From the NCBI GenBank assembly GCA_002794465.1, contig MTSL01000136.1, positions 1 through 7,639 of the forward strand: 7,639 nucleotides of DNA. The letters are read 5' to 3'. Below, piece after piece: positions 2,649 through 7,639 of this stretch (within the stretch, counting starts at the first letter, position 1; each line of letters opens with the position of its first letter). The position numbers and the translations under genes were made by a program. The stretch is from Paramicrosporidium saccamoebae KSL3. Lineage: Eukaryota; Fungi; Cryptomycota. The notes below the pieces were generated by a model. That model was not told the origin of the DNA. It did no database searches and saw nothing but the letters and a program-made list of their open reading frames with translations.

Positions 2649-3392
2649 ATGCTACCCACTCCCGATTTGGCGCATCTTTCTCATCGTGATTTTGAATGTG
2701 TATATGAACCCGTAGGTATTCCATGTGTTACTGGGCCTCACTTTGCGTAGAGGATACGTTTTTAATGCTCGACGCGTTGGAGCAAGACGTGGAAGAGCTA
2801 AAACTAAAGAAGCCTTTGCTTTGTCTTGAGATAGGGTACTGACTAGTTCCTCAAGTTCTCAACTACTAGGTCTGGAAGCGGCTGCACAATTACTTTTTTG
2901 TCAAGGATACTGCATCCGGTGGTTTGTGTAGCCACCGACCTGAATCCAGCCGCCACACTAGCTACCATACGGACTGGTGAACGAAATTTAGCCTCGGTCG
3001 ACTGTCTTTTAACATCACTCAGCAATGGGATCCAAAGCCGAAGTCTATTTGATATAATTGTTTTTAATCCACCATATGTCCCTACTGAGGAGCTCTGTGA
3101 GATGGCCGCGCGTCCAACACATGAAAACATTCACGGCTGTGAACCGGAAGACTTGTTGGAGGCAGCCTGGGCAGGCGGTGCCGATGGCCGCTACTGGATC
3201 GACAAGGTTCTTCCCAGTATTGATGGTCTCCTCTCGAAACAAGGAACGTTCTATATGATTGCCCTACAGGCGAACAAACCGGAAGAACTGATGGCTTGGG
3301 CGCGTCGAGATTGGGACCTCGAGTCGAAAATTGCCTTGAAGAGAAAAGCCGGAATAGAAGATTTAGTAGTCTTAAAGTTCTGGAGGTCCTAG
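2649..3392 (+). CDS. MTQ2: HemK2/MTQ2/N6AMT1 eRF1 glutamine methyltransferase; join(2649..2715,2751..2835,2870..3392), 224 aa
   Basis: Spliced N-terminus [33 protein letters not shown] (family motif VYEPxEDTFLxLDALE), SAM motif LEIGSGSGC, DLN, NPPY, AAWAGGxxGR and GTFYMI. Exon total 675 nt is in frame. Confidence 0.95.
2716..2750 (+). other. Intron 1 of MTQ2 (35 nt)
   Basis: GTATTC...CTCAC...GCGTAG; joins VYEPV|EDTF. Confidence 0.92.
2836..2869 (+). other. Intron 2 of MTQ2 (34 nt)
   Basis: GTACTG...CTCAAC-TACTAG; joins LEIG|SGSG. Confidence 0.92.
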
Positions 3393-3508: not shown

Positions 3509-5575
3509 TCATCCCACAATCTCAGAGTTGAGGCTCATATTTGTAAACGCCTCCAAATCAAAGTAGGGGACGGAATCGGCAGAATCGGGCTCCTGCTTGG
3601 GCGATCCAAACGTTGATCGGATGGTAGAAGCGGGCGAAGCAGATGCGGGACGTGGAATCTTTTCCGGCTCGGACATGTCAACGAACGGAATCTCTTCGCT
3701 CGACTTTTCGAATAATTCTGGATACACACGACGAAGAGCAAGTTGTCGGGCTTTTCGATACTCAATTTCCATCCTCTTCCAATCTAAAAGATCGCTGAGC
3801 CGCTCAGTTCGGTTGCGCATGTTGATCCTTTGACGTCGTGATTTTTGACAAAAGTGCATAAAATACTCAGTTAGCTGGTTGACAGATTCCTCCACTGACT
3901 TTAGTCGGCGATCGACAATGTAAATTCCGTAATCCGCCGGGTTCTCTACGTTTTCTTCAATAAAACATCCAAATCCTGACAAATTTGTAGTGACAGATGG
4001 AATCCCCATCACGGTACACTCTGCCGGTGTATATCCCCATGGTTCATAATAGGAAGGGAACACTCCCAAATGGCACCCACGAACAAACTCCTCATACTCC
4101 ATTCCAAGCACTGGATTATGAGAATTGAGGAATTCGGGGTGAAACACCACCTTTACACGATCATGGCGAGAGTTGAGCAGCTGTAAGCGGCGCAACTCCA
4201 TTAAAATGGGATCTGCGCCACTGTCAACCATGTTATGAGTCACTACGGGGGGAAGCGTGTCTCTACGCAGAGCAAGTAAATGTCTTTTCAGAGTCACAAC
4301 GTCCTCTTCAGCCAGCATATCTTCTGTGGGCAAGATTGCGCCTCTAAATATTAAATGGTTGATCGGCACACCACCTTAGTGCACTATCGAAAATCCGCTG
4401 TCCGACTCTTTCAGTAATCTTTTCAACAACATCATGAAGCTGCTTCGTGACGGCTTGTCCCTTGAGGGCTTCTACATTGTAATTGTTAGTGGCAGCGGGC
4501 ATGATGATGAATGCCACAACGTTCATGGGACTGTTGTACTGTTTCAATTTGAAATTTAGCCCTACGAATCAATCAGCATAATGGGCTTACGGGCAAGTGC
4601 CTCCAGGTACAAATCGACACCTTTGTTGCGAAACTCGTAGCGGCCAGCAGTGAAAAAATACAGAGTATTATCAACTTCAAAGTCATTGTGTCCATAAAAG
4701 TGGCCCTGAACGAATGCGTGAATCTTTTCCTTGTTCTCGTTGTGCTTATTGTGAAGCTCGTGTAGCGTGCTAAACTTTTGGCTGTTGAGTCCATTTGGCA
4801 AAACGCCATCCGGTTTACGCTTCAAAAGATGCTCAGCTTCATAGGCAGTGATGTGGGAAACGGTGGTAAATACGTCGGCACAATGCGTAGCGGCTCTCTC
4901 CAAGCAATATCTATGATAAATGCCTCGCTTCCCAGCCTCTTCGTCTTCGTTAAAGCTCTTGATTCGGTTGTAAAAGTCGACATTTCCAGCGCATAGATAT
5001 CTGCCCAACAGGGTTGCATGAGTTGTAAAAATGGTAGCAATACGCAGATTGCGCTTCTTGACCAAAATACTCCCTACTGCTGACATCCACTCATGAAATT
5101 GTGCAATTATGGGCAGATTGGGCTCCAAATACGAAAATTCGCCCAGGAACCATGCGACGGTGTATCCTAGAAGGATTGCATCATTCATTTCGCGATCATT
5201 GGATGGAGATGGAATCGCCGACTTTTCCCACAGGTCGGCCTTCCATTCATCCAGTCGGTGTGACACGCTTGCGAGATCAAACAAAAGAACACTTGGCGAT
5301 CCCACCACTAGCCATTTTCCTGTGACGACCCGAATACCTTGCTGCCTCATTCGGTTGATGGTTGAGCAGACCGCTGGGCTCTTTGGCTCGCGCTCCTCCA
5401 CTTCCATCGAGGCCTTTCCATATGAATACGGGCCAATGAGGTAGTAATTCTCTCCATATTCGTCTACTGTCACTGCAGTTTTGGTCTTTATCACTGTGTA
5501 AATTCCACCAACCTTGTTCGCAACCTCCCATGATATCTCAAACAGGCATGGCTCGGAGTTTACGTCCATGGTCAT
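3509..5575 (-). CDS. GSY: Glycogen synthase (GT3 family, fungal/animal type); complement(join(3509..4343,4375..4561,4591..5575)), 668 aa
   Basis: [68 protein letters not shown] (catalytic Glu motif), Arg cluster [21 protein letters not shown] and a C-terminal RPAS phospho-tail. Exon total 2007 nt is in frame. The start could alternatively be the second Met at 5569. Confidence 0.96.
4344..4374 (-). other. Intron 2 of glycogen synthase (31 nt, weak GTGGTG donor)
   Basis: Minus strand GTGGTG...TTTAAT-ATTTAG; joins DSAL-R|GAILP in frame. The alternative donor 3 nt downstream creates an immediate TGA. Confidence 0.85.
4562..4590 (-). other. Intron 1 of glycogen synthase (29 nt)
   Basis: Minus strand GTAAGC...GCTGAT...CGTAG; restores conserved EALAR|LN. 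Confidence 0.93.
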
Positions 5576-5713
5576 TTAATTACCGCGGATATGGGCCCAG
5601 CCCTTATAAGATTAATCGCCATTTTCAGAAATGCCCCCCATTTGATAAATTACCATGGATACCCGTTTTGGAAATCGTCATGCATAAATAGAAAACATGA
5701 ACCCATCGCATTC
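5576..5713. promoter_or_regulatory. 138-bp divergent promoter region between glycogen synthase and the REC114-like gene
   Basis: Head-to-head gene starts, with TATA-like TTATAAG (5604-5610) and short palindromes CCGCGG and TGGGCCCA. Positional inference only. Confidence 0.4.
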
Positions 5714-6640
5714 ATGCTTATATCGCTCCCTGTCGAGAGATACTCCAGGTGCTATCCTCGATACGAAGAACAGTACTCAGACGTCGGCGGAGAGCCATTA
5801 TACATGCTCATGCCCTCCATGCAAGCCTCTCAATCGCAAATGTTCCAGACGGTTGCCCACAGCAATTTATGGACTGCAATAGCCGAAAGCGAGAGCGTCA
5901 AAGTCAATTGGGAGATGACCGTGGCCACGACAGATGCTGTCACTCTCCAGGTAACGGCTTCAGTGCCCGGCACAACTCTTATACTGGTATACAAATGTAT
6001 TGTTATCGTCACTTTTAGGAACGAATCAGATTTCCCGAGACATTCAATGCAGGCTTCAAGGTTTCCCCCAAGCAGAGGAGCCTGGGATTTCGTTATCTTA
6101 AAAACCAGGTAGAGAGGTGCATTCTTCTTCAAAGCTTAGCGTCAATATTTGTTCCAAGTAATCTTTTCAGAGGAATTCCAGTGTCGTCTTTGCTACGATT
6201 CAATGTATCGATTCGGGATCCTAAATCCAATATGGACAACGCCATTCCAATTTGACAACGGCATGGAATGGGCTAGCTCGGAACCGAAGCAATTGGAGGC
6301 CCAGGAACATAGGGTCCCGGAAAACGAGCCAACTGTACCGATTGCACCGATTGTTCTGAGTGATACGGATTCTAACGAAACTACTTTATCCAGTCAAGAT
6401 GAAAGCATAGATTATGCGGCTGCACTAACAGGAATAACAGAGCCGGCCTTGCTATCTGCTGACCTGCCAAACGAAAGACAGATTCAATGCATTCAAGAGC
6501 GCTCCCGCCGAGTCATTCTGAGAGTGGATCCATCCAAAGCGGAAAGATTGAGAGATTCAGTGCAGCGGTATAGTTCGCAGAAATCTGATAACCCAAATGA
6601 CTTTTCGTTTTTATTGGCTGCCTCGTACGGAACTCAATAA
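5714..6640 (+). CDS. REC114: Probable REC114/Rec7-like meiotic DSB protein (N-terminal PH-like domain); join(5714..5986,6019..6108,6140..6640), 287 aa
   Basis: The spliced product shows REC114 signature segments in the expected order: LPVERYSRCYP (cf. human WPLQRYARCIP), NLWTAI (PTWKVF), GTTLILERIRF (GQTLLEGFSL), SLGFRY, and YLFQVIFSEEFQCRLCYDSM (RLFRVQF...CCSCVQKL). These are followed by a low-complexity acidic linker and a helical C-terminus. The length is similar to vertebrate REC114. The assignment is by eye; no HMM was run. Confidence 0.72.
5987..6018 (+). other. Intron 1 of REC114-like gene (32 nt)
   Basis: GTATAC...GTCAC-TTTTAG, phase 0; joins TLIL|ERIRF. Confidence 0.7.
6109..6139 (+). 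other. Intron 2 of REC114-like gene (31 nt)
   Basis: CAG|GTAGAG...CTTAG, phase 0; joins GFRYLKNQ|RQYLFQVIF. Branch-point match is poor. Confidence 0.72.
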
Positions 6641-6641
6641 A
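6636..6641 (+). terminator. Candidate poly(A) signal AATAAA overlapping the REC114-like last codon, its stop and the A of the SDR ATG
   Basis: ...ACT CAA TAA ATG GAA... Confidence 0.4.
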
Positions 6642-7513
6642 TGGAACGTTTACGAAACAAGACTGCTCTCATGTAGGATTCGCATACCAAATGCTATTCA
6701 CTCTTCCAGAACAGGAGCCAGCTCGGGGATAGGAGAAGCGTGTGCATTCGAAATGGCCGCTTTAGGCTGCAACTTGGTTTATGACCTCATAATGACTAAC
6801 TCGGTGGTAGATTCTGTTTGCAAGACGTTTGGATAGACTGAGAGTTTTGAAAGAGACACTGGAAGAGTGCTCTTCTTCAAGTGTTCAGATTCATCAAGTA
6901 GATATTAGGGACAAGGAAGCGATACGGGCAGCTCTAAAGGAATGCTCCGACATTGATATACTCGTCAACAACGCCGGTTTGGCGCTGGGAATAGAATCTT
7001 TTGTCAATACTGATGAAGCAGCATTGGAAGTGGTGGTGGACACTAATATCAAAGGACTAATGTATGTAACACGGGAGGTGCTCCCTAAGATGCTCGCCAG
7101 TGAGAGCGTCTGTACTGTTATCAATATCGGTTCTATCGCTGGAAAACAGGCATATCCGAACGGGTCGATCTATTGTGCGACAAAGCATGCCGTGCATGCA
7201 CTAAGCCAGTCGCTACGAATGGAACTAATCAGCACCAAAGTCCGAGTGGCAGAGATAAATCCTGGTACCAATCGCAGTTGCATCTTGATGACTGCTAGGA
7301 CTTGTGGAAACTGACTTTTCAGTGGTACGTTTTGGGGGCGATTCCGACCGTGCCAAATCGGTTTATTCTGGAATGAATCCCTTGACTGGAAAGGATGTTG
7401 CTGAGATGGTCGTGTTTATTGCAAGCCGACCCGATCATGTTCAAATCAGCGAGATTGATTGCTTCCCCACTAATCAGGCTTCTGCTTACCATGTTCACCG
7501 ATCCCAAGTGTGA
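6641..7513 (+). CDS. NADP-dependent short-chain dehydrogenase, YdfG/YMR226C (3-hydroxy-acid / L-allo-threonine dehydrogenase) family; join(6641..6672,6710..6776,6811..7264,7299..7513), 255 aa
   Basis: MERLRNKTALITGASSGIG (Rossmann TGxxxGxG), ILFARR (basic residues typical of NADP preference), ILVNNAGLALG, GSIAG, YCATK catalytic motif, PGLVETDFSVVRF and FPTNQAS, closely like yeast YMR226C. Exon total 768 nt is in frame. Confidence 0.92.
6673..6709 (+). other. Intron 1 of SDR (37 nt)
   Basis: GTAGGA...ATTCAC-TCTTCCAG; joins ALI|TGASSG. Confidence 0.9.
6777..6810 (+). other. Intron 2 of SDR (34 nt)
   Basis: GTTTAT...GACTAAC-TCGGTGGTAG; joins GCNL|ILFARR. Confidence 0.9.
7265..7298 (+). other. 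Intron 3 of SDR (34 nt)
   Basis: GTACCA...ATGAC-TGCTAG; joins EINP-G|LVETDF. Confidence 0.92.
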
Positions 7514-7610: not shown

Positions 7611-7639
7611 CTAGGATTAGCAGTGAACAAACCCCCCCC

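Follow-up and report, generated by a model that had tools for sequence, protein, structure and literature searches.

A three-exon Rec114-like gene hidden in a fused dehydrogenase annotation of Paramicrosporidium saccamoebae

Exon-intron structure and conservation of the gene

The window analysed here is an entire 7,639-bp contig of Paramicrosporidium saccamoebae, on which five genes were delineated from open reading frames (ORFs), Pfam matches and splice modelling. The subject of this report is the gene at 5714-6640 on the + strand, which has three exons, encodes a protein of 287 aa and is very probably a functional member of the Rec114/Rec7/REC114 family. Exon 1 (5714-5986; 273 nt, frame 2, residues 1-91) carries the conserved start, the motif 'ERYSRCYPR.EEQYSD..G.PLY.LMP' and the first strands of a predicted PH-like domain. 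Intron 1 (5987-6018; 32 nt, GTATAC...TTTTAG) and intron 2 (6109-6139; 31 nt, GTAGAG...GCTTAG) are both phase 0 with GT..AG boundaries, and they enclose exon 2 (6019-6108; 90 nt, residues 92-121, ERIRFPETFNAGFKVSPKQRSLGFRYLKNQ), which is read in frame 1, unlike exons 1 and 3, and contains 'FP....FKVSPK..SLGFRY'. Exon 3 (6140-6640; 501 nt, frame 2) supplies residues 122-287 and the TAA stop codon at 6638-6640. The unspliced ORFs that span the locus, 5591-6112 and 6149-6640, look unrelated, and neither alone matches any Pfam family. A preliminary description had joined them into one spliced gene with two introns, a 90-nt middle exon in another frame and a 287-aa product. Its coordinates and arithmetic are exact, and the joining is borne out by the sizes of the local introns, by the pattern of change against a close relative and by intronless homologues.

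Very short introns are the rule across this contig. Nine spliceosomal introns are modelled within its 7.6 kb, each 29-37 nt long, and TAG closes seven of them, including both introns of the Rec114-like gene (and five of the other seven). The glycogen synthase gene (3509-5575 on the - strand, start codon at 5575) aligns to its Pfam profile without a break (positions 1-627 of 639, 1037 bits) once its 31- and 29-nt introns (4344-4374 and 4562-4590) are removed, and the short-chain dehydrogenase (SDR) gene that follows the Rec114-like gene yields a complete adh_short match (profile 1-187/195, starting at residue 7, E-value (E) 7e-50) without its introns of 37, 34 and 34 nt. The modelled methyltransferase gene, with introns of 35 and 34 nt, is an open frame that matches an intronless methyltransferase in a related genome. 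Because these conserved neighbours carry introns of the same sizes, the tiny introns of the Rec114-like gene are more than a product of chance.

Among 1.84 billion representative proteins, HMMER found 25 relatives of the window protein, and these support both junctions. Junction 1 ('L|E.h.FP') is read through in P0004, P0005, P0007, P0022, P0013 and P0019, and junction 2 ('RY....|..hFQ..F') in P0004, P0005, P0007, P0022, P0016, P0025 and P0026. The exon-2 segment, which transcripts skipping the middle exon would omit, is contiguous in P0007, P0004, P0005, P0022, P0013 and P0019. At the intron 1 position, eight metagenome fragments stop in '..hL' and then 'V' (GT.). All homologues start 7-8 residues ahead of 'RY', at the position of ATG 5714. 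An in-frame ATG further upstream, at 5591, was considered as the start and rejected, since it is not conserved in the orthologue of a close relative, where ATG 5714 is kept whereas the sequence upstream of it diverges.

That orthologue lies on a JGI metagenome contig (L001, of which the Logan contig L002 is a sub-sequence). Intron 1 measures 38 nt there and 32 nt in the window, a difference of 6 nt, and intron 2 measures 29 and 31 nt; a 2-nt difference in length is incompatible with coding sequence. Indels within the exons (69 and 9 nt) are all multiples of 3. Differences at codon positions 1/2/3 number 17/15/80 over the whole coding sequence, 4/3/26 over residues 1-91 and 3/3/9 in exon 2, and the stop codon is kept. 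The Nei-Gojobori ratio of nonsynonymous to synonymous divergence (dN/dS) is 0.073 with a synonymous divergence (dS) of 0.65, and regionally it is 0.071 for the PH domain, 0.084 for the linker and 0.052 for the C-terminus. The gene is under strong purifying selection. The larger indel is a 69-nt, 23-codon insertion rich in Pro, Gln and Ser (SQTPISQMPQTPISQAPLLRAPI) at L001 1699-1767, relative to window position 5842/5843; it falls in the loop after residue 43, at the low-confidence residues 43-45 of the AlphaFold model described below.

Gene order extends the comparison beyond L001. In L003 (NCBI assembly GCA_020047435.1) an intronless 307-aa orthologue (P0007) is found in the same order as in the window, i.e. 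AAA ATPase, methyltransferase-like gene, glycogen synthase on the - strand and Rec114-like gene on the + strand. The divergent pair of glycogen synthase(-) and Rec114-like gene(+) is kept in the window, L001, L003, L004/L005 (P0004) and L006 (P0024), and orthology is shown across at least five syntenic loci. The divergent pair in the window is separated by an intergenic region of 138 nt (5576-5713). Positions 5576-5690 are 89% identical to L001 (103/116 aligned columns), far more conserved than the synonymous sites of the flanking genes (dS ~0.65-0.69), and L001 then carries a 74-nt insertion just ahead of the start codon. The block 5576-5690 is probably a constrained bidirectional promoter or 5' untranslated region.

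The public gene model and the downstream dehydrogenase

The locus already has a deposited annotation. Protein P0001 (NCBI/UniRef, 453 aa, "Serine 3-dehydrogenase") aligns with 92% identity over 99% of the spliced query and is reproduced exactly from the sequence when introns are placed at 5951-6018, 6109-6172 and 6625-6676, all with GT..AG splice sites. If this model were right, the region would be the N-terminal extension of a single 453-aa dehydrogenase; for all that it is the annotation on record and can be rebuilt to the letter, it is almost certainly wrong. Its introns measure 68, 64 and 52 nt, against 29-37 nt for the introns modelled locally. Its donor, 5950|5951, is wrong and removes VTASVPGTTLIL (12 residues), a segment that differs from L001 by only two synonymous changes, and its wrong acceptor, 6172|6173, removes RQYLFQVIFSE (11 residues), a strand in which one synonymous and one replacement change are found. 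Both segments are kept in intronless homologues. When both are removed, the match to the Rec114 family profile PF03525 discussed below is gone, and the N-terminus of the NCBI model accordingly has none.

The third intron of P0001 is spurious as well. It takes away the stop codon, which L001 shares, and so joins the Rec114-like gene to the dehydrogenase. The SDR gene (6641-7513, + strand; introns 6673-6709, 6777-6810 and 7265-7298) is complete by itself with 255 aa; it starts from an ATG at 6641, shows a textbook N-terminus once spliced (MERLRNKTALITGASSGIG) and has the near-complete adh_short match given above, and the 287-aa protein has no adh_short match in Pfam, so that 5714-6640 is not part of the adh_short protein. 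P0001 also mis-splices the SDR, which it gives without MERLRNKTAL and ILFARRLDRLRVLKETLEECSSSS, and it passes through the third SDR intron to a premature end. In L006 the SDR orthologue is a separate gene 192 nt downstream of the Rec114-like gene, and in L003 and L004 different genes follow the Rec114-like gene. The public annotation hides a Rec114-like gene inside a wrongly fused dehydrogenase model. The annotation problem is a systematic one: real introns of the genome are ~29-37 nt, and the public model on this contig has introns of 52-68 nt and a gene fusion. Other small genes may be hidden likewise.

In the window, the TAA at 6638-6640 directly abuts the SDR ATG at 6641-6643 with zero intergenic bases, and the same is seen in L001. 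Therefore either the SDR promoter or transcript 5' end lies within the Rec114-like gene, or both genes are co-transcribed.

Family membership, fold and C-terminal architecture

The sole Pfam family matched by the spliced protein is PF03525 (Meiotic_rec114, the Rec7 N-terminal domain). The alignment pairs residues 40-134 with profile positions 16-113 and covers all three exons, with E 0.016 and 15.9 bits for the full length and E 0.005 and 17.5 bits for the N-terminal 170 aa. Two homologues, P0005 and P0004, were linked to the window protein by the search described above (E 1e-20 and 4e-24); P0005 reaches 25.8 bits against PF03525, above the curated cut-off of 23.8, and P0004 reaches 23.6. A conserved Trp stands at about the same profile position, 28-30, in all three PF03525 matches. 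Within the family as a whole, 5 of 23 members match PF03525 (best E 3.2e-6), and no other family is matched by more than one member. Judged by sequence, a curated Rec114 profile match may be claimed for the clade by transitivity rather than for the window sequence by itself. The preliminary description had named PF15165 and fungal Rec114/Rec7 profiles for a check; the fungal profile is matched, below threshold here and above cut-off for P0005, and the vertebrate one, PF15165, is not.

Structure prediction points in the same direction. Two alignments in which N- and C-terminal fragments were mixed (A1 and A3) were visibly misaligned, and they were replaced by domain-wise alignments of the N-terminal (A4) and C-terminal (A5) parts. 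AlphaFold2 on residues 1-170 with the 23-sequence alignment A4 gave a mean predicted local distance difference test (pLDDT) score of 84.7 and a predicted template-modelling (pTM) score of 0.79. The modelled PH-like domain (5714-6226, introns included; residues ~1-150) is a beta-sandwich in which the beta strands are followed, and closed, by a C-terminal helix at 133-145. Searched with Foldseek against 350,542 PDB chains, this model has as its top two matches the mouse REC114 PH domain (6nxf A/B; E 5.7e-5 and 3.3e-4, probability 1.00, template-modelling (TM) score 0.68); these are the only matches with E <= 0.001, and generic PH-like domains (Ran-binding, PTB) appear at E >= 0.016. The N-terminal domain is thus predicted to be PH-like and most similar to the REC114 PH domain, and the REC114-type fold that had been proposed for it is recovered in a confident model.

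Downstream of this domain, the protein is predicted to be disordered over residues 151-231 (6227-6469), as in the Rec114 family. This linker is acidic and Ser/Thr-rich, its pLDDT is <50 over roughly residues 168-227, its length varies among homologues, and it carries a conserved 'D(S/T)D.ETTLSSQ' patch. There are five [ST]Q sites in the protein, among them the conserved TTLSSQ patch in the linker, with an SQ at residue 206. Yeast Rec114 has ATM/ATR-type feedback sites, and the [ST]Q sites of the window protein might be candidates for the same role. The linker is followed by a predicted C-terminal helix-turn-helix (6470-6580; helices 232-249 and 252-268; 'QERSRRVILRV-DPS-KAERLRDSVQRY'), for which AlphaFold2 on A5 gives pLDDT 81-85 in the helical blocks. 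In A5 it is kept in P0003, P0018, P0021 and P0024 and partly in P0014. At the extreme C-terminus lies the motif DFSFLLAASYG (6599-6631; residues 275-285), modelled as short helical turns with pLDDT ~61-71 and common to the whole clade as 'DFSF(L/M).P.S' or 'ENLFTPLSFQEFGY' (A1, A5). A Foldseek search with the C-terminal model, which is of low confidence, gave no useful information.

Rec114 proteins have a PH domain with signature sequence motifs (SSMs) 1-6, a disordered region and a C-terminal helix-turn-helix, SSM7, which dimerises and clamps Mei4 (PMC6288613; PMC10393192). The predicted succession of PH domain, disordered linker and helix-turn-helix in the window protein equals this published family architecture, and the helix-turn-helix is a candidate counterpart of SSM7.

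Several results weigh against the assignment. The PF03525 score of the window protein lies below the curated cut-off (17.5 vs 23.8 bits); the L001 orthologue, P0007 and P0022 match no Pfam family, in the case of L001 with the 23-aa loop insertion present and the match no longer found. PF15165 (vertebrate REC114-like) is never matched. Against PDB sequences, the family profiles A2 and A4 reach no REC114 chain, A2 finding nothing and A4 one unrelated, non-significant match (E 0.42); phmmer of the spliced protein against the same sequences gives only a non-significant fumarase match (E 2), and with profile A2 a word-indexed search yielded no named relative, its only results being the four close sequences known before. 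The model and mouse REC114 are only 14% identical when aligned by structure, and the TM score normalised to the query is 0.51. In the C-terminal part, the distant members P0004, P0005, P0007, P0016 and P0025 are without the helix-turn-helix, and the near-invariant Phe of SSM7, which stands just past the turn and is F411 in yeast (PMC10393192), is not evident, the post-turn position in A5 looking by eye like A, I or V in the clade.

These points could be gathered into another reading, in which the protein is a lineage-specific PH-like adaptor functionally unrelated to Rec114 and its resemblance to the family is generic PH-like similarity. The PH-like fold is widespread, numerous PTB and Ran-binding domains stand lower in the Foldseek list, and residues 1-39, with their distinctive motif ERYSRCY...PLY.LMP, are not covered by the PF03525 match; the sub-threshold Pfam score, the unseen SSM7 Phe and the distant members without a helix-turn-helix would also fit. 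A generic adaptor is quite unlikely, however, given that REC114 is the best and the sole match at E <= 0.001 among all the PDB chains searched, that in an independent sequence method the Rec114 family is the only one to recur, with one member above the curated cut-off, and that a PH domain, a disordered linker and a short C-terminal helical element make up the layout of the Rec114 family.

Taken as a Rec114 family member, the protein can be compared with its known counterparts. Yeast Rec114 has 428 aa, and the window protein is shorter with 287 aa. To fungal Rec114/Rec7 (S. cerevisiae Rec114 and S. pombe Rec7; PF03525) the likeness is an in-order match over ~95-110 residues (profile 15-127), together with an N-terminal PH-like domain, a disordered linker and a short C-terminal helical element (PMC10393192). 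It differs from them by ~39 extra, highly conserved N-terminal residues outside the profile match, by its sub-cut-off score, by the lack of an evident SSM7 Phe and by an added terminal DFSFL motif. The mouse REC114 PH domain (6nxf; PMC6288613) and the model both consist of two antiparallel sheets with a helix closing them at the C-terminus (TM score of 0.68 when normalised to the target); the differences are the low identity and the lack of any sequence-level match to PF15165 or to REC114 chains in the PDB. In 6nxf the domain is bound to ANKRD31, a protein found only in vertebrates (PMC10393192), and therefore the interaction seen in that structure cannot be assumed for the window protein. As for plants, the comparison concerns PHS1/AtREC114, which is of the same PH-domain class. 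One family member matches PF25349 (PH_PHS1), which we take to represent the plant Rec114 counterpart, weakly and not significantly (E 0.13), and no such match is seen for the window protein.

The C-terminus invites two further readings. The Rec114 C-terminus may have been remodelled in the Paramicrosporidium-related clade, with the peptide 'DFSF(L/M).P.S' / 'ENLFTPLSFQEFGY' rather than a Phe-bearing SSM7 as its universal element; we regard this as rather unlikely. If it were true, the break-promoting complex may form without the Rec114(2)-Mei4 clamp, with another partner docked through a short linear motif. The C-terminal peculiarities are the only part of the finding that could prove new biology. 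The other reading, that the protein is a Rec114 descendant that works without Mei4, having moved partner binding to the terminal 'DFSF(L/M).P.S' and building its break-promoting complex differently, is highly unlikely. Of the C-terminal elements, the terminal motif alone is common to all full-length members, and it is strongly constrained (C-terminal dN/dS 0.052); the helix-turn-helix occurs only in the closest relatives, and no Phe follows the turn. Yet the window protein does have the helix-turn-helix, as a confident prediction and in conserved form, and distant members may have unrecognised helices or be incomplete gene calls; in addition, SSM7 is poorly conserved and hard to recognise in general (PMC6288613).

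On the preferred reading, that of a functional Rec114 family member, a role can be proposed by analogy. A Rec114 dimer clamps the N-terminal helix of Mei4 through its C-terminal helices in a 2:1 complex (PMC6288613; PMC10393192; PMC10393190). Two copies of the window protein would likewise pair via their C-terminal helices and clamp a Mei4 N-terminal helix in a 2:1 arrangement, and the complex, together with Mer2/IHO1, would bind to DNA along the axis of the chromosome. By its PH domain the protein would dock the Spo11-TopoVIB-like core, leading to the programmed Spo11 double-strand breaks that start meiotic recombination.

Meiotic context and neighbouring genes

The organism itself, a compact amoeba parasite, agrees with the compacted and possibly parasitic lineage suggested by the preliminary description from the DNA. 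The case for cryptic meiosis is already made in the genome paper of P. saccamoebae, which reports Spo11, Dmc1, Hop1, Hop2, Mnd1, Msh4/5 and Rec8 (PMC5701793). Spo11 is PSACC_02320 and Hop1 is PSACC_01776. SPO11, HOP1 and DMC1, which had been named as genes to look for in this genome, are all among those reported; Rec114, Mei4 and Mer2 appear in neither the text nor the supplementary table of that paper. The literature searched contains no report of Rec114 together with Microsporidia, and the top-ranked literature on Rozella and related early-diverging fungi makes no mention of Rec114. The protein is thus a new Rec114 family member in a lineage where the family had not previously been reported. 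The further suggestion that the gene implies a sexual cycle agrees with the reported meiotic genes, but that conclusion was already drawn in 2017; the inference is corroboration and not news, because PMC5701793 had already argued for cryptic meiosis.

What is gained is incremental, given that the capacity for meiosis is probable and had been concluded already. The known meiotic genes of this early-branching fungal parasite, which has a reduced genome and has never been seen to have sex, now include a Spo11 accessory factor besides Spo11 itself. In the break machinery it is the accessory factors that evolve fast, and for lineages of this kind they are usually reported as missing. The seed alignment of ~25 environmental and genomic homologues and the synteny with glycogen synthase could serve in a search for Rec114 in Rozellomycota and Microsporidia.

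In uncultured relatives, the microsynteny runs from the methyltransferase gene (+) through glycogen synthase (-) to the Rec114-like gene (+), followed by the SDR gene (window, L001, L006) or by other genes, and a NatA-auxiliary-subunit-like TPR gene lies further along in L003 and L006. The syntenic genes of L003 and L004 are intronless, and the intergenic spacers of L004 are down to 21-37 nt.

The two remaining genes lie in the first half of the window. An AAA ATPase gene (544-2586, - strand) is a single 680-aa ORF with one AAA domain (residues 432-566) plus lid; its N-terminal 430 residues match no Pfam family, and its orthologue in L003 has 655 aa. The methyltransferase gene (2649-3392, + strand) has three exons and introns at 2716-2750 and 2836-2869. 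Its product is small, contains the motif FNPPYVPT and is 38% identical to the product of the intronless 227-aa L003 gene. From this motif and weak Pfam matches to MTS and Eco57I, it looks like an Mtq2/HemK-type glutamine methyltransferase. The other end of the window closes with eight consecutive C (7630-7639, AAACCCCCCCC), which are probably not biological but an artefact of the assembly or of read ends.

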